A DNA stretch of 64,000 bases. Source: Penicillus capitatus (lineage: Eukaryota > Plantae > Chlorophyta). The notes beneath the pieces are model-generated. The model made no database searches. It was not told where the DNA came from and saw only the letters and a program-made list of their open reading frames with translations. The translations under genes were made by a program, and so were the position numbers. Of this stretch, positions 14,067-64,000 are shown in pieces (positions within the stretch are counted from its first letter, which is position 1; every line of letters starts with the position of its first letter). The stretch is from assembly GCA_965649825.1 (NCBI GenBank), contig OZ287696.1, positions 1,832,081 to 1,896,080 of the forward strand, in the 5' to 3' direction.

Positions 14067-15176
14067 ATGCGTTTGTTCATCGCCGCTCTGGTGTCTTGCT
14101 TCTTAGTCACTGCCCATGCCGCGGGGTTACCTGGGGTAACATGCTGCTACCTTTCGCCGCGGCGTTCTAAAAGATCTCTTCTCTCGCGTAGGCTTACCTG
14201 GCAGGCGCCGTGTGGGAAGGCGTGTGCGACGAAGGAGTCAAACAGAGTCCCATCAACATCGACACGAGAAGTGCGCGTCGTCGACGCCTCGACTGTTTTC
14301 GACGGTCGGTGCGTTTGTCTAGACGTAACGAAGGTGCCGAGCGCGAATGGACATATCGAACTCGTCAACATGGGAATCCTCGCAAATTATACGGAGTTCT
14401 TCACCGGTACGTCGCTGGAAATCCTCTTCGAAGATTTCGCGACGAAGCCTGAAGTGCGGATTCCCGCAAACGAATATACCATCGGCAACAGCACAAAAGT
14501 CGAAAAAGGTCAGATGTTGGAGCTTGAGCTTCTCCAGATGCATTACCATACCGTCAGCGAGCACACGATTAATGGTTTCCACGCCCCCGGAGAACTTCAT
14601 ATCGTCACCAAAGTGAAAGATGGCGAATCCGATTATTGCGATACAGTTGGGTGTCTTGCCGTTTTTGGCATCTGGACTGTCTTCGAAGGAGAGGGCGGGA
14701 AACCGAATGAAGTTCTCGAACAGATGTTCGCCACAGAGCTCCACGCAGCCGGTGTGGATCACGGCGAAAAGAAGCACGAATTGTTGAATCTGAATGAGGT
14801 GTTGCCGGAGTCATTGGATTACTACACATATCTTGGGAGCTTAACAACGCCTCCCTGTTCCGAAATCGTCTCATGGCATATGTTTGCTCAACCGATTGTT
14901 GTCTCGCCCGAAGTGATTGAACAGCACCAGTTCTTGGTGGCAGCTACTCCTGGCGACGATTGCGTCTTTAAATTCGGAGACACGTGTTTTCCGCCACGAG
15001 AGAAAACAGATTACCGTCGTATTCAGAAGTGGAACAAACGATATGTCCACTATGTGGAGTACGCTGGAGAAGAACTGGAAGGAAGAGAGCAAGCAGAAAA
15101 AACGACAAAAGAAGAGGACCATTCTGAGGAAGAGCACTCAGACGAAGAACACTCAGACGAAGAGCACCATCCTTGA
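14067..15176 (+). CDS. Secreted alpha-carbonic anhydrase 1 with His/Glu-rich C-terminal tail
   Basis: Signal peptide MRLFIAALVSCFLVTAHA; QSPINI, QMHYH, SEH, GELH, YLGSLTTPPCSE; two 5' introns. Confidence 0.93.
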   Translation: MRLFIAALVSCFLVTAHAAGLPGVTCCYLSPRRSKRSLLSRRLTWQAPCGKACATKESNRVPSTSTREVRVVDASTVFDGRCVCLDVTKVPSANGHIELVNMGILANYTEFFTGTSLEILFEDFATKPEVRIPANEYTIGNSTKVEKGQMLELELLQMHYHTVSEHTINGFHAPGELHIVTKVKDGESDYCDTVGCLAVFGIWTVFEGEGGKPNEVLEQMFATELHAAGVDHGEKKHELLNLNEVLPESLDYYTYLGSLTTPPCSEIVSWHMFAQPIVVSPEVIEQHQFLVAATPGDDCVFKFGDTCFPPREKTDYRRIQKWNKRYVHYVEYAGEELEGREQAEKTTKEEDHSEEEHSDEEHSDEEHHP

Positions 15177-15694: not shown

Positions 15695-16728
15695 ATGCAC
15701 TCGCTGCTGTTCACTGTCTTTATGACTTACCTCATCACCTTTGCGTCTGGTGGACAGGTATCCAACGGTTTAGAAACGGTACCTCGGAACTGAACAGTAC
15801 ATACAATACATAGGGCGCATTTGATTACCATCCAATGTCCAAGTGGCCAGACATCTGTGCCGTCGGGACAAACCAGAGTCCAATCAACATCGACACCAAC
15901 AGTGCGCCGCAACGGTAGCCGTCCTTCGAAGTCAACTGTTTTGACATTGTAGACGTCGAACCTTCGCCACCAGATGCGTGCCGCGTGGAAATCGGCACCT
16001 TGGGTACGCTCAGTGCGTACACCGTTTTCTCGACGGGTGTCTCACTGGAGGTCGCTTTCGACGAGTGGTCCACCCAACCCGACGTGCGCATTCCTGCCAA
16101 CGACTATACGATCGGCAACAGCACGACGCTAAAACCGGGAGAGATGTTGGCGGTCGAGCCAGTCCAAATGCACTATCACACTTTCAGCGAACATACCTTC
16201 GATGGATTTTACGCCCCTGGAGAACTCCACATCGTCGCGAAGGTGAAGGACAATGCGTCCGACTACTGTGATAAGACAGGTGGTTGTCTGGCCGTTTTCG
16301 GCATCATGACGGCACTAGTGGGCGAAAACGCCCGGACGCATGAAACCTTTGATCACCTCTTCCACGAGATCCCGGATGGGGTGGGCATCGAGAATGGCAT
16401 TTTTAAGGCGAAGAGACTCAACTTGGACGATTTTTTACCGTCCAGTCTTGACTACTACACCTACTTAGGAAGCCTAACCACGCCGCCCTGTACGGAGAAA
16501 GTGACATGGCATGTCTTCACAGAACCGATCTCGGTGAAGCCAGAAGTGATCGAGAAACATCAAATGATGGTCTCTTATACTCCGGGATCTGATTGCGCGT
16601 TCACCGTCTTCGGCACCTGCTTTCCACCGCGAGAGAAAACCAATTGCCGTCGAACGCAGCCTCTGCTCGAACGCAAGGTGTATTTGGTTGAAGACGATGT
16701 GCATGGATGTTTTGGATGCAGTGACTGA
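15695..16728 (+). CDS. Secreted alpha-carbonic anhydrase 2
   Basis: Signal peptide MHSLLFTVFMTYLITFASG; QSPINI, QMHYHTFSEH, GELH, GSLTTPPCTE; same intron positions as CA1. Confidence 0.93.
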
Positions 16729-17726: not shown

Positions 17727-18743
17727 ATGTATCCGTCCTCCTTCCTTGTGGTAGTTCTCTCCGTGTTTATCGCTGGCGTCCATGGAGTCGGGGTATCACA
17801 CGCCGTCTTTAACGATTCGCTTCGTTTCGAATCTTTGTCTTGTGTCGTTTAGCTTGATGTCCGCCACAAGTACTCTGCGAGAGCTCACTGGCCAGATGTG
17901 TGCGAACATGGTCACCAACAGAGTCCTATCAACATCGATTCAAAAGGTGCGGTCACATGTTAATGACCGTGCTGCGTAACAACGCGTCTTGCGCTAGGCG
18001 CGGGTGCCGCACCCGGCCACGCCGGAAGCGTTCAGTTCGGTACGTTGGGTACATTAAAAGAGTATACGGTGTGGTTCACGGGATCGCGTTTACAACTTAA
18101 ATTTGATAAGTGGTCGAAAGAAGCAACTATCCGCGTGCCGGCCAGCCAGTACATGGTCGGCAACAGTACCAATTTGAAAATCGGTGACATGCTCGCCATC
18201 GAGCCCAGGGAGATGCATTACCACACCATGAGTGAGCACACGGTTGACGGATGCTATTTTCCGGGTGAACTGCATATCGTGACCGAAGTCAAGGAGGGCG
18301 AATCGGACTACTGCGATCTGACGGGCGGCTGCTTTTACGTGTTTGGTGTGATGACGGGTTACGAAGGAGAAGGCAAAACCGCGAACAAGGAACTGAAGAA
18401 GCTGTTTTCCAAGATGCCCCAAGGAGTCGGTACCACAGTTGGCATGAATTACAAAGAGAAGCTTAGTATGGACAATTTTCTGCCGATCAATCGAGATTAC
18501 TTTACGTACCTTGGCAGTTTGACAACACCACCCTGTTCTGAGGTGGTCACCTGGTTGGTTTTTACTAATCCCATTACAATCTCCAAGAAACTCGTCGAAG
18601 ACCACCAAATGTTGGTTTCTTTCACTCCTGGAGATGACTGTACGTATTCCTTTTTTGGAGTCTGCACACCGCCTAGAGAGAAAACGAACCATCGCCTTAT
18701 TCAGCCCTACCACGGGCGCCAGATTTTTTTGGTGAAAACATAA
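17727..18743 (+). CDS. Secreted alpha-carbonic anhydrase 3
   Basis: Signal peptide MYPSSFLVVVLSVFIAGVHG; QSPINI, EMHYHTMSEH, GELH, GSLTTPPCSE; same intron positions. Confidence 0.93.
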
Positions 18744-19692: not shown

Positions 19693-20376
19693 TGCACCGG
19701 CTGCGTCCGACGCCATTGACAGCAACGATGTTTTCATTCCAAAAATGACTTTCTCGTCTTAAACTTACCACCTGCTCGCTGTCGTGCATAGTTTGATGGG
19801 TGATTTCAATTGGGTTCCTCGTCTCGGTAAATGCATTACTTATTACGAAACAGGGGGTAGATCTTATCGCGCAAGCTATGTCTGCTGTGTTTTACTTCCT
19901 GTATTCTTCAATGTTTGTACCGTCTCTACCACTTTGTGCTGGACAATGATGGTTCATGTAATGGTTACGCAGGCCTTATGATCATTTTGATCGCTTGGAA
20001 ATGCACCGATCGGGTGGTCCGTTGTTGTTTGATGTGTCGACACGGTAATCCGATTGATGGTATTCGAAATCTACCTGCCTCCATTCATGACCACGCGATC
20101 AGCAACTGAGATACTCAGGACCGTCGATTGTGGATAGGCATTTGACGCATCGCCCTCGGCGAGATATGTGTCCGTCGGCTGCCTCTATGAACTCCGTCGA
20201 GAAGATTGGCGATCGCGGCGAGAAGTCGATTTCACGGTATACGCTTTCGGCCTGTATCCGCGATATAACCGAGATTTCAATCACGCAGACCTCACACGTC
20301 ATTTCTCCAGAGACGGAAGAGAATTGTCAAAGAATGGGTCAGTCGCGGCCAAAAAGAAGTGCGATCGATCATCGCG

Positions 20377-25301: not shown

Positions 25302-27332
25302 CTACTGCACGACTCCGTTATGAAAAGGACAATTTCCATCCTTCATATTGTGCTCCGTTGATGCGATCTCTGGGCCATGTTCGACGGAAGTGGGCAGCCG
25401 CTTCGTGAACTGAAGATAGAGTCCGTTTGCAGAATGTATCGTGGCGCCTAAGACAGTGTCATATGTGTTGATGCAGGTATCGTGTTGCATCGCGCACCTG
25501 ACGTCAGTTGCACCTCGGGTGCATCTGGGGCCAATCTGAAATCATACCGTTGCAAAATGGAAGCCACAATTTCGAGCGATTCCAACAAGGCAAATTGCGA
25601 TCCTGTACAGCAACACGCCGTTAGATAGGTGTTGCCTGGCATTGTTCTTCACCGATGCATTTTCTCCGTCCGGCCCCGAACGGAAGGTAGCGGAAATTCG
25701 TAGATATCTCATTCGGCATGCCTGCTTTCTTTGGAAAACGATCGGGATCAAATTCCAATGGGTTCTCCCACAGAACGGGTGATCGATGGAGGTTCCAGAT
25801 GGATAGAAAAATGTCTGCTCCTTTCGGCAGCTCGTACTTCCCAAGCTTGACAGACTCCAACGCCCTGCGGATCAGCACTGGCGGTTGTGGATAGAGTCGC
25901 ATGGCTTCAGCCAGAACCCTCATGCAAAGATCCAGTTGCAAAAGGGATGTTGATGTGACAGGTCCATCTCCTAACACACGATCAATCTCTTTCTGCATCT
26001 CTTTCACAAGATGCGGCTTTTTCGACAGCTCAAAGAACGTCCAGGTAAGAACAGCCGCCGTCGTTTCGTGGCCAGCAATGAGAAGGGTCATCAGATCATC
26101 CATGAGCTGCTGACCTGAGATCACTTCTCCACTGACAATGAGAAAATGCAAAATGCTCATGGTCGAGGAATCGAAGGCATCATCCTTTTCCACTGTCTCG
26201 TGGACATGCTGCACGAGACGATCGATGGTCTCGCGCATCACATTGAGACTCTCCTTCACACGACGCTGCTGAGGGATGAGGACGTCGACGAATGGCAACT
26301 TCCACCATGGCATGGCAGCCACACTTCGATGCTCAGCTTCGCGTAGCACAATATATACTGCCTGTCACATCAAGCTGCTCCACAAAAACAGACATCTCGT
26401 GGGAGGAAGGTGACTTGAATGACAGGATCGTCGTGTGTCGTGGCATCGAAGTCATGATTAAAGACAGCGCGGCCAATGATGTCTAATGCCAGCCTCGAAA
26501 AGAAGGCCTCCATTTCCACCGATTGTCCATCCTCTGCCGCCGCATGCAATTTCTCCAATCCCCTTTTTGTGCACTCGTTAAACATGACCATCATTCTCTC
26601 GATGAACGCTTTGTGCAGGGATGGCAGAATCGCACGTCGTCTTTCCATCCAGATCTCGCCGTTGGCAGGAATGAGACCGTTACCCATGACGAACTCCAGG
26701 ATATCCGAAAGAATCCCTTTGCTGTATTTCTCAGCCGATGTAGATAGGATCTCCCGCATCAGCTGCGGATCCGAGACGATCACGAAGGATTGTGGTCCAA
26801 AAGAGAGCTTGAAAATACCGCCATACACGCGGAAGAGCTCGTAGAGAGGCTCGAAGAAAGGTCGGTCGACCATCTCTGCGAGGCTACCGGATGCCTCAGG
26901 CAAAGAAGCGCGCTTTGTACGCAGATACCAACGACAGAACTGGGCACCTCTGTACGCCAATGCCCGACCTGGATAACATCATCCAACAACGCTGCCACGT
27001 GCAGGTGCCGAAGTACCGAAGGGTCCCATAGAAGCCAGAGATCGACGCCATGGCTGCGTTCGCTCTGCAATGTTCTTCCTTGAGAACTCCCCACTGAGAA
27101 TGCGTTCTTCGAGCGATGTCTCTTCTGGCGAAGCATCGATCGAGTCGCTGAGCGATATTCGACGCTGCGTCGGATGCTTTTGTTGGTGGATCGAGGATGG
27201 AGTGGCATCGCGGAGCAGACTGTTGACATGCAGCGACGTTCTGGACTGAAGAGGTTTTTGCGACGTCCTCGGGCGTCGCGGAGGTTCGGAACACAGGGGA
27301 CGGTCAGCAAAGCGGCAACGAGCTGCAGACAT
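25302..27332 (-). CDS. CYP97A: Cytochrome P450 CYP97A (carotenoid beta-ring hydroxylase, LUT5-like)
   Basis: PLYELFRVYGGIFKLSFGPQSFVIVSDP, YSKGILSDILEFVMG, AGHETT, EAMRLYPQPP, heme motif PFGAGRRKCIG; N-terminal transit peptide. Confidence 0.92.
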
Positions 27333-27375
27333 GCCTAAATAAACCCTAAAACCCCTCAGAATCCCACACGTCGCA

Positions 27376-28489
27376 TCAGAAAAGGGCGTCCTGAATGGCT
27401 CGGACTTTTGCAGCAGAGCCAAAAAAAGTCGGCGCGCCCCATTCACAACGATTCAGTTGCGCGGCGCTTTTGTCGTTCTTGGGCACAAAGACAAGTTTCC
27501 ATACGAGAGAGTAGCGTGGGCGATTGGCCAATGGCGACGGCGTCGACAGACGATGCATGATATCCTGATCCATCAACACTGCCCGACCTCTCTACCATCA
27601 CAGCCACGCTCTCCATCCGAAACGCATCGACTGGCGGACCTTCGGCCGAACAAAGATGCCTGTCTCGGTGTGCGAATCAAGGAACAGCGTCTCTGCATCC
27701 CATTCCCTCTCCCATTCAGAATTGAGATAGACCAACAGACTCACAAACAGAGGCTTTCCCGGCTCCTAATGCAACAGGGCGTTGAGGAATGCAGAGAGTA
27801 AGGGTGGCTGTCGTACGCCGTTGAAGTAGATACCGTGTTGCTGTGCCCAATCGGAGGCTTCGTCAAACGTCCAAGGATCGGCATCGACATGCCACTGAAA
27901 GCAATCGCCATACACCGCTGCATTCGCCACGAATTTATCACAGTCATAGTTTGCCGCTTCGTCTGTCTTCGATCCCGTATTGGACTGAATCTGCTCCGAT
28001 GGCATGTGGAAGATATCGACCTATGACATCCGACTGTTTGTATATCACACTTTTGTTTTCTCACACTTCTGGATAGAGTTTACACAATCGAGTATGGATT
28101 TCGACCATCGCTGGCGATGGACGATTCAACAGTTCCTTGATACAGGAATCCTGCAGAGCAGATGGACTGGGTAGATCGAAGACTTCTGTCCTTGCCTTGA
28201 GTCCCCATGACGGTGGCAGTCCTGCCTGATCACATGTAGCCCTCTGCCATCGTGTTTCGGGCGGCGCTTCATCTTCTCGCCACTGCGGTATGTTGACACA
28301 GTCAAACAAATCTTTCCTCATCGTCTCGTCGAAGAAATCATCCAACACCACCACGTGTCCATAACTCAAACGTGCTGAATCGGCGTCGGAAGGGACGATA
28401 CACGCTTCGGTGCAGATATTGATGGCGACTTTGGCGTTTTTTGGTTCCCACTGTGTCGGATGGGTGAGGACTTTCTGCATCGATGACAT
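27376..28489 (-). CDS. 2OG-Fe(II) dioxygenase (prolyl-4-hydroxylase-like fold)
   Basis: FQWHVDAD (HxD), SLLVYLN.EW, a His-containing HRLS strand and PRYS (RxS) across spliced exons. Confidence 0.72.
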
Positions 28490-33949: not shown

Positions 33950-34630
33950 GTGCTTCGACGCATTCTGTATCGGGGGAGATGTTCTGTTTCTCCGTACTGC
34001 ACGTGTCACACTTCCCTTTCAATGTCTTCGGAGATCTCCGGAACTCACCCAAGATGATGTGGCATGGATGACAGCGAGGAATGATCTCTTGATGGAGAAT
34101 GTGTCATCCCCGGTCTCTTATTCCAAAGAAGAGGCAATGCCAATGATCTCAAGTATTCCCACGTCCAGTCTCGAGGTCTGGAATGCTTCCTCGTGTGCTT
34201 CCACCACGCGAATCTCAAGATCGGCATTTTCATGGTATCATCCTGCATCACGAAAAGCTCGGCAGGTTCTCTGTCTGTCTGTGATTGAAAGCGGATCATG
34301 GTGGTGTCCAACAACTTCTCATTTCCGTCACGAGTCATTCGCTGAAAGGACGACGGATGCTGGATGCATTTGTCCAAGCACAGTCTTCGCGGGAATGTCA
34401 AATGTGGAGAAGAGAGTAACTCGTTCTCCTCGAGAGAGAATCCGCGCATTCTTTCAGTATCTTGGATATCATGTGATTTCTCACTCTTTCACTAAGCTTC
34501 TGTTCAGTAGGAAGTCGACCGTTTCGAATGGCATCGAGAGCAGTGCGCATCAGCACTGCTACTGTGCGGATTCTTCTCTCTGTCTACTCGTGCGTTGTCT
34601 GCGAATCTCTACCAGACTCGATTGACCATA
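33950..34630 (-). pseudogene. Degenerate coding remnant, partly duplicated at 48420-48948
   Basis: Protein-like segments in different frames (MRTALDAIRNGRLPTEQKLSERV; DLEIRVVEAHEEAFQTSRLDVGILE) broken by stops. Confidence 0.3.
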
Positions 34631-35975
34631 TCAGATGTGTTTAAAGCAGTTTACTCCATCTATCTGCGCTCATGCAGCATCTCCGTCGTCTGATAGTGAA
34701 CAAGCAACATGACAGCAGTCAGTCATTACACGTTGTGGTGTACGGTAAGACGACAGTGTCTTGTGTCCGGAGACATCGCACGCCAGCTCATCTACTCGCG
34801 TGGCAAGATAGCAGATCTCCGTCGCCAGCATGAAGAGAATTCGCCGTCTCCTCGCCTCAGCTTAAAGAAAACAGCCAGGGCGAACAGTTGCAGAGTGCTT
34901 AGAAAACAAAACCACTGTACGACGGTATGCAATGCAATGCCTCGTCGCTTGCCGAATGACCAACGTCCGACGATCTCTTGTACATACCACATGCCTTCGC
35001 CTTCATTCGAGACTTGCCTCGTTTCATTTCTATGGAAGATGCGAGTTTAGCACGGGAGAAGGGTGGACTCGGCGAGACGCTGGTTTTTGTCCGACGACAA
35101 CCGAGAACCTACTCTTGTGCTGCTCGGCGCTTGTTGGCTCGGACGGCGGCCCCGTCGACCGGGTGAATGGGCGACCGCAACCACTGTCAGAATACAAATC
35201 GCGGAGCGTGTCTGGATTCAGACGCGCAGACAGCCAGTCGCCTGGAAAAGGGGCGCTAGTAAACGACGGACCGCGACGAGCGTGCTGCGTGTTTTACATC
35301 TTCTGAACGGGAGGGGATTATTTGGGACGCCGATTCTTCCCTCGAAGATGCGCCTGTCGACAGAGCAGCCGCGCCATGGACAACCCTGAGAATCGTTCAT
35401 TTCCGTTCCACGGCCTCGAACGTTCGCTCAGGTGACATGTCGGCAATCGGCGGCGTAGATCGCCTTCAACTTTGTGGTATGTTTCTTGAAGAGATCTTTC
35501 GGTTGTCGTCGCTAAAAACCGACGCGAGTCTCTGGTTTGTGGCGCGTACGCTATTCTCGACTGCTGCGGCATCAGCGGGAAATGGCAACAAGCGAGCGCA
35601 TCCTCGCGCCCGGGCGGTCAACTCAGTCACTGCATTAGGCAAGTCAGAGCCCGTTCCTCTTTCGCAGTGACCGTGCAAGGCGGTCGACCGTATTCGTTTC
35701 GCAGGGAAACTGCCTCGCTGAGTGCTGGGAGGCAAATGGACGCTAACCGTTGGGCAGATGCGCGCCCGCCAGAGCAGTCACATCGCGACTGATCCCGAAT
35801 GAGAGCGCGAGGATCCTCAAGAGCTTTCCATGCAGCACCATCTGCTGGGTCGCAGGCGACGGATACGACCGAATTGGAAAACGCAGCTGCCTGCAAACGA
35901 GGCAGCTGCCGAATTCGGACACGTCGCTTCGGGTTTTTCTGACTGAAATTCACACCGCTGACTGCAGCTGCATGG

Positions 35976-35982
35976 TATAAAT
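35976..35982 (+). promoter_or_regulatory. TATA box of secreted-protein gene, copy 1
   Basis: TATAAAT ~95 nt upstream of the ATG, conserved in all three copies. Confidence 0.6.
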
Positions 35983-36071
35983 TCGAGCAGAATTCTCCAC
36001 CACTGCCATTTCCCTTTACGCGTTTGTGTCTTCTGTGTCTCCGAGGTTCTTCGAACTCCGTCTCAAACACC

Positions 36072-36573
36072 ATGTCTGCCAACGCAGCTTTGTTCGTCTT
36101 TGCCGCTCTTCTCTGCCTCCACGCAGCAAGATCCCTTCCACCGCAGCAACCCTCGATGGCGAATGTTTGGTGTTCTGGCAGGTGAGCGCTTACCGCCCCA
36201 CCACAGAGTTGGTCGTCGACGAGAATGGCCACGTCAACGGCAAACAGTTTTTGAATACAGACAACGCTTATGGTATGGCGGGCAGCGTTGCGAAAACTCT
36301 TTTTATTTTGCATGTGCATGTGAAGTCCCAGGTGAGAAGTATGTTGGAAACCGTGTCTACAGTACTCGAGAACCAAATTATAACGAATGCATAAGATTCA
36401 TATGCGATAAGAGCAAGTCGCCAGATCTATTTCGTCAAGTGTCGAATGAGACTGGCTCTGTCTTAGTGGACCTTGTGGCATGGGACTATTACTCAGCGGC
36501 TGCTACATGCAATGGATACGATGCGGAGTATCCCGCCGAAAAAGCCGAGGGTTGGGTGAGAGGCCTGTGCTAA
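36072..36573 (+). CDS. Small secreted Cys protein with PAN/apple-like domain, copy 1 (112 aa)
   Basis: Exons 36072-36125, 36182-36272, 36326-36412, 36467-36573; signal peptide MSANAALFVFAALLCLHAVSA; mature end ...NECIRFIC...VAWDYY...TCNGY...GWVRGLC*. Confidence 0.8.
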
Positions 36574-36994
36574 ACAGGTCGCCTGAAGAACGCAAAGCCG
36601 ATCGCATTCTTTCCGGTCTAAGTTCTGGAGATTTTGCATGACTGTCTGGAACAATCCGGTTACCTTTGAATGTTCGATTTAATGAACAGCGCAGCCGTTT
36701 TTTGAATTCGGTCTCATGACGCATGCCCTTTCCAGCGATCATGCATCCCAATTCGGACTGCTGAGATAAGAGTGAATGTGCATGACTCGCGAAGAGAGTA
36801 GACGATGGCGCTAGATATCTCTGAGGCTTGGCAAATACATGGTGCACAAGAGGTGAGAAGATCTTTAACATAAGACAATCGAGATACTGAAGAAGCTCGT
36901 AACAACAGCGTCCGATTTTCTGTCATCATCCGTGGCCTTACAATCGCGTTTACGATGGTCGCACGCATCGAAGACAGATTTGGCTCCTGAACTA

Positions 36995-43482: not shown

Positions 43483-45955
43483 ACTCGCCCCTTCGCCGTC
43501 TAGAGTGTGCGTTCCTTCTCGACATGTTTGTCGTACAACGATGCCTTTTGTACACTTTGACGTCAACCACATCTGCCGCCGTGCGTCTTTCGTTGACTGA
43601 ATCGCGATGCACGCCACTTCGATTTCGGAAATGCGAAGTGGATAGCGTTCTGTTTGCTGCCTCATGTTCAGTTGCTGCTCGCGCAGGACTGATCGATATT
43701 TTGCACGCGCTCGGTTACAAGAGACCGATGTCCATTTCGAGTTTCAACAAGCCGCATTTTGAGCTCATGGCCGATATCTTACTGTGGTTGGTGAAACGGT
43801 ACAGAGTGCCATAGATAACTTTGCAAACGCACTGAAGAGCATGGCCGCCTTCTTAGTTGTCATCCAGACATCGACCTGCCTGAAGAGATTGGCACAGAGA
43901 CGGAAAGGGTTGTCTTTCTGACGCATGCAGGATCGCTCCTGTACACAGAGTTTCATCTGAAGCTGGATCTCAAGCGCCTCTACGCGGCGGAAGGCGATGC
44001 CATCGGAGAGTTGCTGAAGGTGGCCACTCTGTTGCATGCCTCGCGGCATGCCGGAGGCCGCTCGGTTTTGCCCGGCATCTCTCAAGATGCTCGTAAACTG
44101 TTGCTGCTGTAGACAAGCGACGGGATGCGTTCGGAAGACGTGGATTGGACGCTTGTACGTCAAGACAGGAGGCGTATCCAGGAACTGATCGAGAACCTTG
44201 GCCGCACAACGTTTGCTCTGCAGAAGGCACTCGAATGCGAAAAATCAGGAAATGACAGCGCACGTCGAAAAGCGATTTCGGTTGCTGTCGACTCCGAGGA
44301 GTTCGTTGCTGCCTTTGACACCCTCTCCTCGAGAATGGACAGTGATCTGAGGTGAGCCGTGCCTTCGAATGCGCGTTGAATTTATGCGGCTGTGTGCATT
44401 AGGGCGAAATCCGGGCGACTAGATGAAGTCTCTGCCGCAAAACAGAAAATCGAAGAGGCTGTCGATTTCAAAAGAGCCGAACTGAGACGCAGCGAGAAAC
44501 GCCTTATCTCGTTGAACACGATACGGCCGTCGTACATGGATGAATACGAAGCGCTTCAGTCTGAATTCCATACTCTGTACTTCCACAGTGGCCTCCGCCT
44601 TGATGAAAACTGCAGCGTCGTGCACTTAGTTACAAACGCTACGTTGAACAGTTTAGGAACGTGAACCACTTGGAGTGTCGCCTCGCGAAGCATCGCAACA
44701 TCGAGATGGCGAAAAAGCATCGCGAGGATAGGGAGATGAAGAGATTACAGAAGCAATGGAAGTGGGCATATACATTCCAATGTCGTCGCTTGTTCTCACC
44801 GACCATCTGCTGTACGCATTAGAAAAGAAGACGGTGCATTCTCAAAGGGCGAACAGAGTGGCATCGATTCGTCTGACACCTCTTCGGACAATGAATGCAC
44901 AAAGGAGAGAAGTGCATCGTGTGGAATCGATGTTCACCTGTCACAGAGAATCCTTTCAGGGCTTAATATCGAGATTCTGTCGAGAGATGACGACGACGGA
45001 GTGACGTTCATCGACGGGCGCAAAGTCGTCGGACGGCTTGTTCATCACGACGACGCATCTGATGCGGAGATCGAAGATTCTAGTGTGGACATATCGAGTG
45101 TTGCAGAAGATACAGACGCGTGTGAAACGGAAATTGCATCCAGTGATGGCTCAGTAAGTGCTTATCCGTCTCATGACGCCAAAAGAAGCCTCTTGCAACA
45201 GAGTCATGCACTTTCCAAGACGGGTTCACGTTCGAATGACGACGTTGTCACACCGCCTGATGACTTCTAATATCATTACCCGCCTCGAGATTGTCTCTCT
45301 TGTATGTTTCGATCTTTTTGATATGGGCGTCGCTCAAGAACTGCCACGCTTGTGTTCGATATCGAAATCATGGAGATCAAGAAGCCTACATGACATTTGT
45401 GTGAGTACTTGGGACTGATTCTGTGATGACCGTTCCCATTGTAAGAAAAACGAATGCCATTTGTAGAGAATGCAAAGATCGAAGCGCGTGCCTCTCCTGG
45501 CTACGACGAGCAAATCATCCAAGACGACGCTAATGCTTCTGTGAGAGCTGTGCAGGATGACCAAGAGATGGATATTAAGAAGGAGGAAGGTGTTCTCGCC
45601 GCAGGGCTGTGTGTGTCTAGTGGGATTGGGTGCCTGTGGTCTTCTCTACGTGGACGTCTTCAACTGGCTCCCAGGATCAATACTAGAATGCCCCATCCGC
45701 TCGACTGCTTGGGGAACACCCCTGGAGAACACTTCGTGGCCCCAGCAACTGCCCAACGGACTCTATGCATGGGTCCTGGAAGAGGACCCGAAACGTCACC
45801 TCATCTTGCGCGGTTTGTTTCTGCAGTGGGTCCTGGAAGACATCGATGGCCTACCGAAGGATCTAGCCGAGTTTGCAGGGCATGTCTCGGTGGTAATGAA
45901 TATCTCTTCGCTCTGCGGTTTCACTGAAACAAACAAACTACAGAGGCAAGCATCA
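43446..45955 (+). repeat. Inverted duplication block X, left arm (true left end not resolvable because the partner runs off the window)
   Basis: Collinear reverse complement of 61492-64000 (coordinate sum 107446-107447). Confidence 0.95.
43607..45270 (+). CDS. IFT38: Intraflagellar transport protein IFT38 / CLUAP1 / FAP22, copy 1
   Basis: LHALGYKRPMSISSFNKPHFELMADILLWLVKR, TETERVVFL, LKRLYAAEGDAIGELLK, IRPSYMDEYE, acidic tail ending DDF*. Confidence 0.88.
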
Positions 45956-46130: not shown

Positions 46131-46533
46131 ATCCTTCGAATGTCCTCCAAAGTGTGTAGTGATGTCCCATGAGGCCAGCTGAGATGAGGAGAGTGCGACG
46201 AGATCGAGGGTCCTATTCGTCTCGCCTAATAATACGCGTCGGCAGTTCTACCGGGAGCAATTGGCGGTCCTGATGAGAAGACGCGCAGAGCCAGCGTTTT
46301 TCGGGCACGGAAGGCAGCAGACCGCCTGGCGATCATGGCCATGAAGACGCCGTCGGTCGCGTTTCGTGATCGTCGAAGGGGACGCGCGTAAGACCGACCG
46401 AATTCAAAAAACGGCTGCTGTTCATTAAATCGAACATTCAAAGGTAACCGGATTGTTCAAGAGAGTCATGCAAAATCTCAAGAACTTCGACCGGAAAGAA
46501 TGCGATCGGCTTTGCGTTCTTCAGGCGACCTGT

Positions 46534-47038
46534 TTAGCACATGCCTCTCACCCAGCCTGCGGCTGGTTCATGGGGAAACAGCCTGGCGTATCCATTGCAC
46601 GTACCAGAATTCGTGTCAAAGTCCCATGCCAAAATGCCAACCCCTAGACAGAGCCACCATCATCCGACACTTGACTGAATAGATCTGGCAACTTACCAGA
46701 GCATAGGTGCTTAATGCAGTCTTTAATAGTCAGTTGTTGTGTTGTGGAGGCAGCTTTTCCAATGAACCTCAAATCCTTGACTTCGCATGCACATGCAAAA
46801 TAAACAAGAGTTCTCGTTACGCTGCCCGCCATACATTGATTGGCGAGGCCTGTCTTCAAGAACAGTTTGCCGACGACGTGTCCTTCTTCGTCGACTACCC
46901 ACTCTGTGGTAGGGCGGTAAGCGCTCACCTGCCAGAACACCAAACGTTCGCCATCGAGGGTTGCTGCGGTGGAAGGGATCTTGCTGCGTGGAGGCAGAGA
47001 AGAGCGGCAAAGACGAACAAAGCTGCGTTGTCAGACAT
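46534..47038 (-). CDS. Small secreted Cys protein with PAN/apple-like domain, copy 2 (113 aa)
   Basis: MSDNAALFVFAALLCLHA|VSAYRPTTEWVVDEEG...LANQ|FKDLRFIG...KDCIKHLCS|GVGILAWDFDTNSGTCNGYARLFPHEPAAGWVRGMC*. Confidence 0.8.
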
Positions 47039-47127
47039 GGCGTTTGAGACGGAGTTCGAAGAACCTCGGAGAGACAGAAGACACAAACGCGCAAGGGGAA
47101 ATGGCAGTGGTCGAGAATCCTGCTCGA

Positions 47128-47134
47128 ATTTATA
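47128..47134 (-). promoter_or_regulatory. TATA box, copy 2
   Basis: TATAAAT on the minus strand ~90 nt upstream of the ATG. Confidence 0.6.
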
Positions 47135-49443
47135 CCATGCAGCTGCAGTCAGCATTCTAAATCCAGACAGCAAACCCGAAGCGACCTGTCCGAATTCGAC
47201 AGCTGCCTCGTTGGTTGACAGCTGCGTTTTCCAATTCGGTCGTATCCGTCGCCTGCGACCCAGCAGATGGTGCTGTATAGAAAGATCTTGAGGATCCTCG
47301 CGCTCTCATTCGGGATCAGTCGCGATGTGACTGCTCTGGCGGGCGCGCATCTGCCCAACGGTTAGCGTCCATTCGCCTCCCAGCACTCAGCGAGGCAGTT
47401 TCCCTGCGAAACGAGCACGGTCGACCACCTTGCACGGTCACTGCGAAAGAGGAACGGGCTCTGTCTTGCCTATAAAGGGACTGGGTTGATCGCCCGGGCC
47501 CGAGGATGCACTCGCTTGTTGCCATTTCCCGCTGATGCCGCAGCAGTCGAGAACAGCGTACGCCACAAACCAGAGACTCGCGTCGGTTTTTAGCGACGAC
47601 AACCGAAAGATCTCTCCAAGAAACACGCCACAAAGTTGAAGGCGATCTCCGCCGCCGGCTGCATACATGTCACCTGCGCGAACGTTCGAGGCCATGGAGC
47701 GGAAATGGTCCTTCTCAGGGTTGTCCATGGCGCGGCTGCTCTGTCGACAGGCGCATCTTCGAGGGAAGAATCAGCTTCGTTAAACCCTCCCCCCGTCCAT
47801 AAGGATGGACAACGCGCAGCAGGTCCGCCGCGGTCCGTCGTTTACCAGCGCCGTCTTTTGCAGGCGACTGCCTGCCTGCGCGTATGAATCCAGACACGCT
47901 CCGCGAAGTGTCTTCTAACAGTGGTTGCGGTCACCCGTTCATCCGGTCGACGGGGCCTCCGTCCATCCTAACAAACGCTAAGCAGCACGAGAGCAGGTTC
48001 TCGCGTTTTCGGCAGCCAAAAACGAGCGTTTCGCCGCGTCCAACCATCTCCCGTTCTAGCTTCGCATCTTCCGTAGAAATGAAACGAGGCAGGTCTTGAA
48101 TGAAGGCATGGCATGTGCAAGAGATCGCCGGAGAGACGTCATTCGCCCGCCAAGCGACGAGGCATCGCACGCAGTCGTACAGTGATTTGTTTTCCAAGCA
48201 CCCTGCAACTGTTCGCCCTGGCTGTTTTCTTCAAGCTGAGGCGAGGAGACGGCGAATTCTCGTCATGCTAGCGACGGAGATCTGCTATCTTGCCACGCGA
48301 GTAGATGAGCTGGCGTGCGATGTCTTCGGACACAAGACACTGTCGTCTTACCGTAACACCACAACGTGTAATGACTGACTGCTGTCATGTTGCTTGTTCA
48401 CTATCAGACGACGGAGATGCTGCATGAGCGCAGATAGATGGAGTAAACTGCTTTAAACACATCTGATATGGTCAATCGAGTCTGGTAGAGATTCGCAGAC
48501 AACGCACGAGTAGACAGAGAGAAGAATCCGCACAGTAGCAGTGCTGATGCGCACTGCTCTCGATGCCATTCGAAACGGTCGACTTCCTACTGAACAGAAG
48601 CTTAGTGAAAGAGTGAGAAATCACATGATATCCAAGATACTGAAAGAATGCGCGGATTCTCTCTCGAGGAGAACGAGTTACTCTCTTCTCCACATTTGAC
48701 ATTCCCGCGAAGACTGTGCTTGGACAAATGCATCCAGCATCCGTCGTCCTTTCAGCGAATGACTCGTGACGGAAATGAGAAGTTGTTGGACACCACCATG
48801 ATCCGCTTTCAATCACAGACAGACAGAGAACCTGCCGAGCTTTTCGTGATGCAGGATGATACCATGAAAATGCCGATCTTGAGAGTCACGTGGTGGAAGC
48901 ACACGAGGAAGCATTCCAGACCTCGAGACTGGATGTGGGAATACTTGAGAATACAGACCAGATGTTACTGATCCTCTGTTCCGTATGTAGCCAGCTACAC
49001 CTTATCGCGAAGGATACTAACCGGCAGACAGTTGGTGAAGTGACGGACAGGTGTTGACGAAGAGTGTTGAGCTATATCCACAACTTAGATACAAACACAA
49101 AGTCATTCGATATGGTGCTCTTCCAAATGATCCAGCCTGTTTGCGCGTGTGGCTGTCGGCTGAGAGACGATGACATCCGCTAAGCGATAATGATCTTTCA
49201 GCAGATATCGAGTTCATGAATATTCGATGCCTATTCCAGACGTAATACCTAGCTTCTGTCTCATCACCTTTATTTTATAAGAAATTCAAATCAAGCAAGA
49301 TACACCTAGTGTCAGAGAGAGATTTCAGCGAATACGTTGTTGAGCATGGCATCTGTGTCATCAGTGGGTTCAGAAGAGACGGCATACATGCACACTTGAT
49401 GTGACGGACGTCTGTCGTACAAACCAAGCTACATCCAATCCCT

Positions 49444-59619: not shown

Positions 59620-60065
59620 CTCTGGTTTATGGCGCGTACGCTATTCTCGACTGCTGCAGCATCAACGGGAAATGGCAACAAGCGAGTGCATCCTCGGGCC
59701 CGGGCGATCAACCCACAGTCCCTTTATAGGCAAGACAGAGCCCATTCCTCTTTCGCAGTGACCGTGCAAGGCGGTCGACCGTATTCGTTTCGCAGGGAAA
59801 CTGCTTCGCTCCGTGCTGGGAGGAAAATGGACGCTAACCGTTGGGCAGATGCGCGCCCGCCAGAGCAGTCATATCGCGACTGATCCCGAATGAGAGCGCG
59901 AGGGTCCTCAAGAGCTTTCCATGCAGCACCATCTCTGGGTCGCAGGCGACGGATACGACCGAATTGGAAAACGCAGCTGCCTGCAAACGAGGCAGCTGCC
60001 GAATTCGGACAGGTCGCTTCGGGTTTTTCTGACTGAAATTCACACCGCTGACTGCAGCTGCATGG

Positions 60066-60072
60066 TATAAAT
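60066..60072 (+). promoter_or_regulatory. TATA box, copy 3
   Basis: TATAAAT ~95 nt upstream of the ATG. Confidence 0.6.
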
Positions 60073-60161
60073 TCGAGCAGGATTCTACACCACTGCCATT
60101 TCCCTTTACGCGTTTGTGTCTTCTGTCTCTCCGAGGTTCTTCGAACTCCGTCTCAAACACC

Positions 60162-60666
60162 ATGTCTGCCAACGCAGCTTTGTTCGTCCTTGCCGCTCTT
60201 CTCTGCCTCCGCGCAGTAGGATCCCTTCCACCGCAGCAACCCTCGATGGCGAGCGTTTGGTGTTCTGGCAGGTGAGCGCTTACCGCCCTACCACAGAGAA
60301 TGTCGTCGACGAGGAAGGACACGTCGTCGGCAAATTGTTCTTGAAAACAGACCTCGCCAACCAAAGTATGGCGGGCAGCGTAACGAGAACTCTTGTATAT
60401 TTTGCATGTGCATGTGAAGTCCCGGATCAAAAGTGGGTTGGACAACCTAGCGTCTCAAAACAACAAGAGACTGTTAACGACTGCGCTTATTACGTATGCA
60501 TTCTCGGTATGTTGCCAGATCTATTCAGTCAAGTGTCGAATGAGGCTGGCTCTGTGCAGAGGGCCTTGTGGCATTTGACTATTACATACCATCTAATACA
60601 TGCAATGGATACGCCACGCTGTTTGCCTATCAACCAGCCGGAGGCTGGGTGAGAGCCGTGTGCTAA
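60162..60666 (+). CDS. Small secreted Cys protein with PAN/apple-like domain, copy 3 (113 aa)
   Basis: All three introns GT-AG. MSANAALFVLAALLCLRA|VSAYRPTTENVVDEEG...LANQ|IPDQKWVG...NDCAYYVCIL|EGLVAFDYYIPSNTCNGYATLFAYQPAGGWVRAVC*. Confidence 0.82.
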
Positions 60667-61390
60667 ACAGGTCGCCTGACAGACGAAAAGCAGATCGCAT
60701 TCTTTCCGGTCTAAGTTCTTGAGATTTTGCATGACTCTCTTGAACAATCCGGTTACCTTTGAATGTTCGATTTAATGAACAGCGCAGCCGTTTTTTGAGT
60801 TCGGTCGGTCTTACGACGCGCGTCCTCTTCGACGATCGCGCAAAGCAATCGATTACGTCTTCATGGCCACGATCACCACCAGGCCGTTTTGCTGCCTGCC
60901 ATGCACTTAGTGCTGGCTCTGTGCATCTTCTTATCAAGATCAACTTCTTCTTGCAGAACGGCAGGCGCGAACACCTTCTTCTCGTCGAACTCTGCTTATC
61001 GACGCCCAGCGTGTTTGTCATGTCGCGGCAGATGCCAGGCATTCAAACGTAGAATGCCCATCCGCGAAGGAAAGACACGCACGGCTCCCGCACGCGGAGC
61101 CCTCAGGTGCTGCAAGCACGGACGCCTGAGCTACGGACAGCTATGTAGACGCGACCTCGGAATCCAATTCGACGAAGCACGCGTCGAAGAAGACGGCAGG
61201 TGCACCTGGCGGATTTGCGATTCACCACGCCAGGAGGCAACACCCTTCGGCGCATCGGCCTTTTCCGTTTTCTTCGCTCGTCGGAGAAAGAAAAACTGGG
61301 CCACAACGCGTCGTTCTGAAAATGGAGACTTGGCCGATCGGACACGGAGTTGTTGAGCACCAGGTTTACAGATGGATCACTGTCAGACAA

Positions 61391-61993
61391 TCATTGTTCT
61401 GAGTGCACCAGTGAGACAATGGCCGGTTCGAGTTTCTCCAAGACGAATTGTCGAGGACAGAGATCGCGAGGCATGTCATCACGGCCGCTTGTGATGCTTG
61501 CCTCTGCAGTATGTTTGTCTCGGCGAAGTCGCAGGGCGAAGCGACATTCGTCATCACCGAGGCATTCCCTGCAAACTCGACTAGATCCTTCGGTAGGCCA
61601 TCGATGTCTTCCAGGACCCACTGCAGAAACAAACCGCGCAAGATGAGGTGACGTTTCGGGTCCTCTTCCAGGACCCATGCATAGAGTCCGTTGGGCAGTT
61701 GCTGGGGCCACGAAGTGTTCTCCAGGGGTGTTCCCCAAGCAGTCGAGCGGATGGGGCATTCTAGTATTGATCCTGGGAGCCAGTTGAAGACGTCCACGTA
61801 GAGAAGACCACAGGCACCCAATCCCACCAGACACACACAGCCCTGCGGCGAGAACACCTTCCTCCTTTTCAATATCCATCTCTTGATCATCCTGCACAGC
61901 ATCCACAAACGCGTTCGCGTCGTCTTGGATGATTTGCTCGTCGTAGCCAGGAGAGGCACGCGCTTCGATCTTTGCATTCTCGACAAATGGCAT
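61391..61993 (-). CDS. Hypothetical spliced gene, copy B
   Basis: Inverted copy of 45454-45955 with a different last exon. Confidence 0.35.
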   Translation of the reverse strand: MPFVENAKIEARASPGYDEQIIQDDANAFVDAVQDDQEMDIEKEEGVLAAGLCVSGGIGCLWSSLRGRLQLAPRINTRMPHPLDCLGNTPGEHFVAPATAQRTLCMGPGRGPETSPHLARFVSAVGPGRHRWPTEGSSRVCRECLGDDECRFALRLRRDKHTAEASITSGRDDMPRDLCPRQFVLEKLEPAIVSLVHSEQ

Positions 61994-64000
61994 TCGTTTT
62001 TCTTACAATGGGAACGGTCATCACAGAATCAGTCCCAAGTACTCACACAAATGTCATGTAGGCTTCTTGATCTCCATGATTTCGATATCGAACACAAGTG
62101 TGGCAGTTCTTGAGCGACGCCCATATCAAAAAGATCGAAACATACAAGAGAGACAATCTCGAGGCGGGTAATGATATTAGAAGTCATCAGGCGGTGTGAC
62201 AACGTCGTCATTCGAACGTGAACCCGTCTTGGAAAGTGCATGACTCTGTTGCAAGAGGCTTCTTTTGGCGTCATGAGACGGATAAGCACTTACTGAGCCA
62301 TCACTGGATGCAATTTCCGTTTCACACGCGTCTGTATCTTCTGCAACACTCGATATGTCCACACTAGAATCTTCGATCTCCGCATCAGATGCGTCGTCGT
62401 GATGAACAAGCCGTCCGACGACTTTGCGCCCGTCGATGAACGTCACTCCGTCGTCGTCATCTCTCGACAGAATCTCGATATTAAGCCCTGAAAGGATTCT
62501 CTGTGACAGGTGAACATCGATTCCACACGATGCACTTCTCTCCTTTGTGCATTCATTGTCCGAAGAGGTGTCAGACGAATCGATGCCACTCTGTTCGCCC
62601 TTTGAGAATGCACCGTCTTCTTTTCTAATGCGTACAGCAGATGGTCGGTGAGAACAAGCGACGACATTGGAATGTATATGCCCACTTCCATTGCTTCTGT
62701 AATCTCTTCATCTCCCTATCCTCGCGATGCTTTTTCGCCATCTCGATGTTGCGATGCTTCGCGAGGCGACACTCCAAGTGGTTCACGTTCCTAAACTGTT
62801 CAACGTAGCGTTTGTAACTAAGTGCACGACGCTGCAGTTTTCATCAAGGCGGAGGCCACTGTGGAAGTACAGAGTATGGAATTCAGACTGAAGCGCTTCG
62901 TATTCATCCATGTACGACGGCCGTATCGTGTTCAACGAGATAAGGCGTTTCTCGCTGCGTCTCAGTTCGGCTCTTTTGAAATCGACAGCCTCTTCGATTT
63001 TCTGTTTTGCGGCAGAGACTTCATCTAGTCGCCCGGATTTCGCCCTAATGCACACAGCCGCATAAATTCAACGCGCATTCGAAGGCACGGCTCACCTCAG
63101 ATCACTGTCCATTCTCGAGGAGAGGGTGTCAATGGCAGCGACGAAGTCCTCGGAGTCGACAGCAACCGAAATCGCTTTTCGACGTGCGCTGTCATTTCCT
63201 GATTTTTCGCATTCGAGTGCCTTCTGCAGAGCAAACGTTGTGCGGCCAAGGTTCTCGATCAGTTCCTGGATACGCCTCCTGTCTTGTCGTACAAGCGTCC
63301 AATCCACGTCTTCCGAACGCATCCCATCACCTGTCTACAGCAGCAACAGCTTACGAGCATCTTGAGAGATGCCGGGCAAAACCGAGCGGCCTCCGGCATG
63401 TCGCGAGGCATGCAACAGAGTGGCCACCTTCAGCAACTCTCCGATGGCATCGCCTTCCGCCGCGTAGAGGCGCTTGAGATCCAGCTTCAGATGAAACTCT
63501 GTGTACAGGAGCGATCCTGCATGCGTCAGAAAGTCGACCCTTTCCGTCTCTGTGCCAATCTCTTCAGGCAGGTCGATGTCTGGATGACAACTAAGAAGGC
63601 GGCCATGCTCTTCAGTGCGTTTGCAAAGTTATCTGTGACAGTCTGTACCGTTTGACCAACCACGGTAAGATATCGGCCATGAGCTCAAAATGCGGCTTGG
63701 TGAAACTCGAAATGGACATCGGTCTCTTGTAACCGAGCGCGTGCAAAATATCGATCAGTCCTGCGCGAGCAGCAACTGAACATGAGGCAGCAAACAGAAC
63801 GCTATCCACTTCGCATTTCCGAAATCGAAGTGGCGTGCATCGCGATTCAGTCAACGAAAGACGGACGGCGGCAGATGTGGTCGACGTCAAAGTGTACAAA
63901 AGGCATCGTTGTACGACAAACATGTCGAGAAGGACGCACACTCTGGAAGGCGAAGGGGCGAGTTCATTTGTGCGACCTTGTCGGGCTTTTTATCGCGAAT
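61492..64000 (-). repeat. Inverted duplication block X, right arm (runs off the window, includes the RBL10 3' end)
   Basis: Reverse complement of 43446-45955. Confidence 0.95.
62177..63840 (-). CDS. IFT38: IFT38 / CLUAP1, copy 2
   Basis: Same exon structure, frame open; N>T, L>P, V>D, E>D and F>I changes in the 5' half, near-identical 3' half. Confidence 0.85.

Follow-up and report, generated by a model that had tools for sequence, protein, structure and literature searches.

The window analysed here, a 64,000-nt stretch of the Penicillus capitatus genome (contig OZ287696.1, positions 1,832,081 to 1,896,080 of the forward strand), carries three copies of a small multi-exon gene for a putatively secreted protein with four cysteines. 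Copy A lies at 36072-36573 (+), copy B at 46534-47038 (-) and copy C at 60162-60666 (+). With B reverse-complemented, the copies align over 1.2 kb at a mean column identity of 88%. An earlier note on this DNA, made from the sequence alone, had all three coordinate sets right and left the minus strand of B unstated. It had missed the chief feature, namely that exons 3 and 4 are hypervariable while the introns and flanks around them are conserved.

A short four-exon gene and its family

A single four-exon model fits all three copies, with coding sequences of 339, 342 and 342 nt (in the order A, B and C, as below) and zero internal stops. Exon 1 is 54 nt and intron 1 is 56 nt in each copy. The others are exon 2 of 91, 94 and 94 nt, intron 2 of 53, 54 and 54 nt, exon 3 of 87, 84 and 87 nt, intron 3 of 54, 53 and 53 nt, and exon 4 of 107, 110 and 107 nt with the TAA stop counted in. 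The introns are short but normal for the genome, as the GT-AG introns of a CYP97 gene elsewhere in the window measure 44-48 nt. GC donors start three of the nine introns, as GCAAGA in intron 1 of A and B and as GCAAGT in intron 3 of A.

Retention of intron 1 ends the frame at a TGA stop in the window copies, so its splicing is required. The frame-breaking 1-nt indels among the copies are confined to introns 2 and 3. The promoter segment GCATGGTATAAATTCGAGCAG, 21 nt long and holding TATAAA, is identical in the three copies and occurs exactly 3 times versus 0 expected, with TATAAA 91-96 nt 5′ of the ATG in each copy. Thus, the TATA box, the four short exons, the stop-free splicing and the intronic place of the frame-breaking indels, all read earlier from the letters alone, are borne out in every copy. 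An alternative code with TAA and TAG read as Gln was ruled out, exons of 240-900 codons being free of both.

The conserved non-coding parts of A, B and C share a recurrent hexamer, TGCATG. It stands twice, back to back, just before the intron 2 acceptor (TTTTGCATGTGCATGTGAAG; 36300-36325 in copy A), once beside the TATA box (35965-35975) and once in the 3′ untranslated region (UTR; 36625-36635).

The encoded proteins have 112-113 aa and begin with MSANAALFVFAALLCLHAVSA followed by YRP, in the pattern MS(A/D)NAALFV(F/L)AALLCL(H/R)AVSA before YRP. The first 21 aa read as a signal peptide with an n-region, a 12-residue hydrophobic core, V at -3 and A at -1, in support of the earlier assignment of a signal peptide ending in VSA. 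After it come a conserved 27-aa segment (YRPTTExVVDEEGHVVGKLFLKT) and a four-Cys C-terminal domain of about 64 aa. The motif G-x13-C-x4-C-x6-A[WF]D-x6-TCNGY-x10-GWVR[GA]xC, ending at the stop codon, was also given in the note and matches exactly in all three copies.

The protein probably enters the secretory route, to judge from its N-terminus. The CYP97 N-terminus of the same genome is Ser/Arg/Pro-rich and transit-peptide-like without a hydrophobic signal peptide, which indicates that the plastid is primary and hence that a signal peptide means the secretory route. Plastid targeting through an ASAFAP-like motif, here ASA before YRP, was ruled out because the plastid is primary and the segment after the cleavage site is acidic.

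The family is lineage-restricted. A profile of the three proteins, searched against 5.8 billion proteins (word-indexed), matched only 10 open reading frames (ORFs), all from ENA metagenome assemblies and all unspliced read-through translations of the same gene type; a profile of eight sequences, searched likewise, added one ORF. An exhaustive hmmsearch of 1.84 billion representatives gave one further family ORF and one spurious immunoglobulin-repeat match, the latter because intron-derived columns stood in the profile. No family member was found in a scan of the JGI metagenomes. A collection of 15 billion proteins has neither the exact spliced proteins nor the versions that retain introns, so the family was rightly called hidden.

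The contigs with family genes come from two assemblies, ERZ25074695 with flanks 92-94% identical to the window and ERZ26696514, which is 70-82% identical to the window. Counting the window and these close relatives, the family has at least 12 loci. Hence its description as three-membered holds within the window and not overall, and the check for more copies that had been proposed finds none further in the window, and more loci in the related genomes. A translation at 19945-19977 (+) of the window, DGSCNGYAGL-like, recalls TCNGY in its SCNGYAG part (tblastn E 0.3-0.5) but is weak, has no other family features and is probably a chance match.

Spliced ORFs are intact, with the same intron positions, at L001, L006, L002, L003, L004/L005, L007, L010 and L012/L013, while L008 and L011 are doubtful as spliced family models. 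Across the window and eight related loci, exon lengths vary by multiples of 3 only (exon 2 of 91, 94 or 97 nt, exon 3 of 84, 87 or 96 nt), and intron lengths vary by 1-10 nt. The aligned loci share the pattern [DE]C-x4-C-x5/6-[AS]W-x-[FY]-x6/7-C-x-[GA]-[YFM]-x10/11-GW-x3/4-C, in which the four Cys, A-W, one Gly and nearly always one Trp are invariant.

The GC or GT state of the intron 1 donor differs among the family members. In the more distant relative (L002, L003, L004, L007 and L012), intron 1 has 57 nt and is open in frame, versus the frame-shifting 56 nt of the window copies. Gene callers therefore read through it, as in the translations P0002, P0004 and P0008.

Variable exons between conserved introns

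Between the window copies, nucleotide identity is 91-97% in the 5′ flank, 94-98% in exon 1 and 93-98% in intron 1. It then falls in the exons, to 79-89% in exon 2, 53-64% in exon 3 and 72-79% in exon 4, whereas intron 2 keeps 92-96% and intron 3 keeps 85-89%. The outer flanks are 99-100% identical over 1.4 kb downstream between B and C and over 1.3 kb upstream between A and B. Compared with the relatives, identity is 57-96% in the introns and 34-54% in exon 3.

The three parts of the protein differ accordingly. Identity is 94-98% of nucleotides in the signal peptide, 46-93% of amino acids in the N-terminal segment and only 20-50% of amino acids in the C-terminal domain, whose four Cys are invariant. 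The ratio of nonsynonymous to synonymous divergence (dN/dS, Nei-Gojobori) of the C-terminal domain exceeds one in the four closest pairs, being 3.2 for B-C (Fisher p=0.02), 1.8 for A-C, 1.6 for C-L001 and 1.2 for A-B. Its dN amounts to 5-12 times the divergence of the introns. For the N-terminal segment, dN/dS is 0.2-0.6, which indicates purifying selection on the sense frame.

The haplotype-like contigs L001 and L006 run colinear over 16 kb at 97.6% identity. Taken in windows of 100 columns, their identity drops to 55-58% over exons 3-4 with 97-100% on either side, and their domain proteins are 26% identical. Moreover, L001 is nearer to window copy C than to L006, both in exon 3 (74% versus 43% of nucleotides) and in the domain (50% versus 26% of amino acids). 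The haplotigs of the second relative, L004/L005 and L012/L013, are near-identical at the family gene.

Targeted mutagenesis of the kind driven by diversity-generating retroelements was ruled out, as the substitutions in the variable exons span all base pairs with no adenine bias. A search for conserved RNA structure in intron 3 gave a weak stem with no covariation. The strong conservation of the short introns may reflect a splicing constraint on tiny introns, or the introns may act as recombination arms.

Candidate fold and function

We favour, at somewhat better than even confidence, a secreted PAN-like binding module under diversifying or balancing selection. A small TATA-driven four-exon gene would yield a precursor of about 112 aa in three parts. 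The 21-aa signal peptide would direct it into the secretory pathway, and the conserved 27-aa segment would be a possible pro-region or docking region. The domain of about 64 aa would fold as a minimal PAN/apple domain, with a strand, the C-x4-C helix, the AW[DA][FY] strand, a hairpin, the C-x-G-[YF] strand and a C-terminal GW..C strand.

The scaffold of four Cys, A-W, G and W would be held fixed, and the other positions of the domain would be pushed to diverge from one paralogue, orthologue or haplotype-like contig to the next, with the signal peptide, UTRs and introns preserved. As an extracellular binding or recognition module, the domain would have its surface under diversifying, probably balancing, selection. 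Its partner would be one that changes fast or differs between individuals, either a microbial or viral surface in an arms race or a conspecific cell.

PAN/apple domains bind carbohydrates or proteins. Their fold packs a single alpha-helix against an antiparallel sheet of five strands with a hairpin at its centre. Two core disulfides join the first helix Cys to a Cys of the central strand and the second helix Cys to a Cys two residues before the A-F-x-Y strand, and apple domains add a bridge between the N and C termini.

A minimal PAN-like fold is fairly probable for the family on the modelled structure. AlphaFold2 with a 9-row alignment gave a mean predicted local distance difference test score (pLDDT) of 65, with residues 60-112 at 74-92 in a single folded model and the order of strand 58-63, helix 67-77 and strands 82-86, 91-95 and 107-111. 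Foldseek with this model returned only PAN/apple proteins among the top 50 PDB matches (E 0.02-0.8), including the HGF N domain, Sarcocystis SML-2, factor XI/kallikrein, plasminogen, AMA1, EtMIC5, TgMIC4 and a PAN-bearing fungal copper oxidase. The SML-2 alignment has a root-mean-square deviation of 2.2 Å over 57 columns and a probability of 1.0. Giant-virus proteins of the Apple/PAN kind make up most of the top BFVD matches (E 0.007-0.1).

The core spacing C-x3/4-C ... A-[FW]-x-[FY]-x6-C, which is alike in PAN/apple domains, is present in 11 aligned members. Its part A-[FW]-x-[FY]-x6-C is the same as in plasminogen PAp and the HGF N domain, with 10 residues from A to Cys as in PAp. The set of disulfides would differ from the canonical PAN one, as the third core Cys is absent and the fourth Cys is C-terminal in the 11 members. 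The second helix Cys may instead pair with the C-terminal Cys, so that the disulfide would be rewired. Numbered as in copy A, the predicted pairs are Cys70-Cys92 and Cys75-Cys112.

Several results weigh against this reading, the first of them on the fold. The Pfam PAN models (PAN_1 PF00024, PAN_2 PF08276, PAN_3 PF08277 and PAN_4 PF14295) match none of eight members even at E<=10, the family profile found no PAN chain nor any other among the PDB sequences, and hhalign against six verified PAN_1 domains was not significant (E=0.34, probability 0.2%). Only one of the five AlphaFold models is folded, the other four having pLDDT of 42-47, and some of the nine alignment rows carry intron-derived residues. 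The Foldseek E-values across the libraries are 0.007-0.8. Two positions before A-W, all 11 members have a residue of the Leu/Ile/Val/Ala/His/Lys/Glu/Thr type and never Cys.

The rest concern expression and selection. The spliced product was found in none of the searched protein collections, and the three GC donors may mean poor splicing of copies A and B. The excess of dN over dS is individually significant for B-C only, the exon 3 alignment is near saturation, and dS is raised too in the variable exons. The allelic status of L001 and L006 would follow only from synteny and similar coverage. The intron conservation exceeds neutral expectation, for which our reading offers no explanation.

A doubtful yet possible alternative is that the secreted hypervariable family is real but not PAN, the short motif C-x4-C...A-W-x-Y...C having steered AlphaFold, and that the domain has another or new small disulfide fold. 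The failure of every sequence-based PAN test, the four unfolded models, the unusable helical model from a single sequence (pLDDT 51), the missing third core Cys and the extra C-terminal one all fit this. However, two independent structure libraries return almost only PAN/apple proteins, and the predicted order of secondary structures agrees with PAN. The best local alignment of hhalign, although not significant, is exactly in the PAN register, eC..C....AWDf......C.Gy facing C..C......C.aF.f......C. The PAN/apple assignment in the earlier note is supported in part. At the level of predicted structure it has AlphaFold and Foldseek with PDB and BFVD in its favour, the proposed structure check giving nothing but PAN/apple matches in the PDB top 50, though from one folded model in five. 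It fails on Pfam, the PDB sequences, hhalign and the canonical Cys.

Compared with known PAN/apple domains (the HGF N domain, plasminogen PAp, the factor XI/prekallikrein apple domains, Sarcocystis muris SML-2, Toxoplasma MIC4 and Eimeria MIC5), the family has a similar modelled topology, a two-Cys helix on an antiparallel sheet with a central hairpin. Those domains are extracellular protein- or carbohydrate-binding modules, and the family is likened to them by prediction. It differs in having no significant sequence similarity and only four Cys, with the Cys before the A-F-x-Y strand replaced and a Cys as the last or near-last residue. Furthermore, it has a single domain of about 64 aa after its own conserved 27-aa segment, and an extreme variability.

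In BFVD, the closest structural matches are Apple/PAN proteins from giant viruses of protists and algae (Mimiviridae, Marseilleviridae, Tetraselmis virus 1 and CeV-01B). These proteins exceed those of the family in size, often have several domains and are unrelated to them in sequence. A functional link of any sort, for instance rivalry for shared surface ligands, is speculation.

The mode of evolution is best filed with that of the conopeptide-type families, such as the conotoxin superfamilies and Mytilus MgCRP-I, as a likeness not of homology. Crotaline venom PLA2 genes are another hypervariable secreted family of this type. A conserved signal and N-terminal region precedes a hypervariable mature part on a fixed Cys framework, the introns and UTRs are more conserved than the mature-peptide exons, and dN and dS are both raised in the last exons. 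Among conopeptide genes, the introns of one superfamily are conserved, also between species, and both dN and dS increase toward the mature-peptide exon (PMC3862624). The mussel MgCRP-I peptides have a pre-pro region that is conserved and a mature peptide that is hypervariable (PMC4558851). Unlike those of animals with a venom gland, this family belongs to a green-lineage alga, its introns are about 54 nt instead of kilobases, its predicted fold is PAN-like instead of knottin or defensin, and it lacks a recognisable propeptide cleavage site and any known toxicity.

By this analogy the family could encode prepro-toxins or antimicrobial peptides, in which the 27-aa segment is a propeptide to be removed and the hypervariable domain kills or inhibits competitors, grazers or microbes. 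The conserved signal/pro region before a hypervariable Cys-rich part, the cross-species intron conservation and the rise of dN and dS toward the last exons would all suit it. We consider it distinctly unlikely, for the alignment has no dibasic or other processing site between the conserved segment and the variable domain, the predicted fold is that of a binding module and not of any known toxin or antimicrobial peptide, and the domain has no obvious cationic or amphipathic character.

Another analogy is SCR/SP11, the Brassicaceae S-locus cysteine-rich pollen ligand, which has a defensin-like 8-Cys fold and a single locus tightly linked to its receptor kinase. Like the predicted family proteins, it is small, secreted and Cys-containing; its signal peptide is conserved, its mature part is highly polymorphic, and its divergent variants lie on otherwise similar haplotypes. 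The family differs in being dispersed and multi-copy, in its four Cys and in the lack of a conserved linked receptor.

A ligand for self/non-self recognition or mating compatibility, whose divergent alleles long-term balancing selection would preserve across species while recombination homogenises its flanks, could account for the 26% domain identity of L001 and L006 within their near-identical surroundings, and for the trans-specific pattern in which L001 is nearer to copy C. It is nevertheless highly doubtful. The paralogues are many and dispersed instead of forming one locus, no receptor gene is consistently linked to the compared loci, whose neighbours differ, the haplotig pairs L004/L005 and L012/L013 are near-identical at the family gene, and L001/L006 allelism is itself tentative.

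Non-functional repeats, that is, decaying pseudogenes or non-coding parts of duplicates with ORFs intact by chance, or an antisense gene with the introns as its exons, are very improbable: the copies do lie in large recent inverted duplications, stop-free antisense frames of 120-256 codons cover the 5′ half in most loci, and spliced products are missing from the searched protein collections, but 11 loci in 3 genomes keep the frame, the four Cys, A-W, G, W and 3n-only exon indels at 50-65% nucleotide divergence, and the N-terminal segment is under purifying selection in the sense frame. The antisense gene in particular was rejected, its frame being broken in L003 and L004 with no Pfam match; the antisense frames are probably a by-product of the sense frame and the base composition.

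The favoured binding module would matter in a setting where algae interact closely with viruses, bacteria, grazers and partner cells. Few algal extracellular recognition proteins are known, and we know of no hypervariable family of this kind described in algae. The family is a compact and easily cloned candidate, with genes of about 500 nt and a 64-aa variable domain on a fixed four-Cys scaffold. Its signatures, namely dN above dS, an island of divergence in near-identical haplotype-like contigs and conserved introns, mark genes of venom, immunity and mating recognition in animals and plants.

The PAN fold is widespread in apicomplexan adhesins, plant S-domain receptors and giant viruses, and the family, if PAN-like, would add to it a variant of unusually small size whose disulfide is rewired. 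Its absence from the 15-billion-protein collection implies that short multi-exon genes can escape detection.

A bolder extension, conceivable though unlikely, is an algal hypervariable recognition system. Ancient divergent variants of a PAN-like ligand would be kept by balancing selection across species and haplotypes, and the conserved introns and UTRs would serve as homology arms for the exchange of variable exons between dispersed paralogues. If true, this would amount to a repertoire for allorecognition, mating compatibility or innate immunity that has no described counterpart in green algae.

Genomic setting

The coordinates of the gene parts and other features are collected in the table.

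Table. Positions of family gene parts, conserved blocks and nearby features (window coordinates unless a locus is named)
Feature	Position	Strand	Remark
TATA box, copy A	35976-35981	+	TATAAA in the 21-nt segment identical in A, B and C
Exon 1, copy A	36072-36125	+	first 18 signal-peptide codons
Intron 1, copy A	36126-36181	+	GC donor GCAAGA
Exon 2, copy A	36182-36272	+	VSA cleavage site and conserved N-terminal segment YRPTTELVVDENGHVNGKQFLNTDNAY
Intron 2, copy A	36273-36325	+	GT-AG, 53 nt
Exon 3, copy A	36326-36412	+	hypervariable; C-x4-C helix at its end
Intron 3, copy A	36413-36466	+	GC donor GCAAGT, 54 nt
Exon 4, copy A	36467-36573	+	AWDYY...TCNGY...GWVRGLC, then TAA
TATA box, copy B	47129-47134	-	same 21-nt segment
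Exon 1, copy B	46985-47038	-	four-exon model
Intron 1, copy B	46929-46984	-	GC donor
Exon 2, copy B	46835-46928	-	four-exon model
Intron 2, copy B	46781-46834	-	
Exon 3, copy B	46697-46780	-	hypervariable
Intron 3, copy B	46644-46696	-	
Exon 4, copy B	46534-46643	-	stop codon included
TATA box, copy C	60066-60071	+	same 21-nt segment
Exon 1, copy C	60162-60215	+	four-exon model
Intron 1, copy C	60216-60271	+	GT donor GTAGGA
Exon 2, copy C	60272-60365	+	four-exon model
Intron 2, copy C	60366-60419	+	
Exon 3, copy C	60420-60506	+	hypervariable
Intron 3, copy C	60507-60559	+	
Exon 4, copy C	60560-60666	+	stop codon included
Promoter and 5′ UTR block, copy A	35636-36071	+	conserved; 91-97% identity, 400 nt upstream
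Promoter and 5′ UTR block, copy B	47039-47483	-	as for copy A
Promoter and 5′ UTR block, copy C	59716-60161	+	as for copy A
3′ UTR-like block, copy A	36574-36713	+	conserved; similarity stops ~140 nt past the stop codon
3′ UTR-like block, copy B	46417-46533	-	as for copy A
3′ UTR-like block, copy C	60667-60806	+	as for copy A
Stop-free antisense frames	35627-36376, 59834-60445; same region in L001, L002, L006, L007	-	overlap promoter and exons 1-3
FKBP_C ORF	L002 12265-12603; L004/L005 12325-12561; L007 12366-12596	-	downstream of the family gene
Retroelement sites	L006 1-4026; L007 13883-18387; L002 19568-20510		

Inverted segmental duplications of 98-99% identity bracket the three copies (43513-45955 with 61492-63934, and 34147-34741 with 48356-48950). 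The relative's syntenic region L004 joins the window's 28.1-33.6 kb directly to its 53.9-62.1 kb. Hence, about 20 kb of the window, with A, B and a PRMT5-like ORF in it, is extra DNA, either inserted or duplicated and in part inverted.

The window further holds a cold-shock-domain ORF and three tandem ORFs of eukaryotic-type alpha-carbonic anhydrases (14067-15176, 15985-16728 and 18045-18743, all +; Pfam E 4e-26 to 5e-30), which look like a tandem gene cluster. The CYP97-type cytochrome P450 gene, for a carotenoid hydroxylase, lies at about 25383-27446 (-). Its best named relatives are those of Coccomyxa (52% identical) and land plants (about 50%), and this green-type gene with its transit-peptide-like N-terminus is consistent with the algal origin earlier ascribed to the family. 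The source thus appears to be a photosynthetic eukaryote of the green lineage, an alga that is poorly sampled and has very short introns. GC content and intron size exclude a chlorarachniophyte, and scans with Rfam and for tRNAs gave no match.

The neighbour genes vary by locus and include FKBP, kinase, NCD3G/Ephrin_rec_like, beta-propeller lectin and POT1/Ras/GYF genes. In four loci of the relative, the family gene is followed about 2 kb downstream by an ORF with an FKBP_C domain, so the relative's duplicated unit includes FKBP_C; the FKBP exon of the relatives was not found in the window by tblastn.

Within a few kb of the relatives' members are ORFs of Ty3-type long terminal repeat retrotransposons (gag-protease, reverse transcriptase and integrase) and of a long interspersed nuclear element (RVT_1 plus endonuclease). 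At L006, the retroelement begins where the colinearity with L001 stops.

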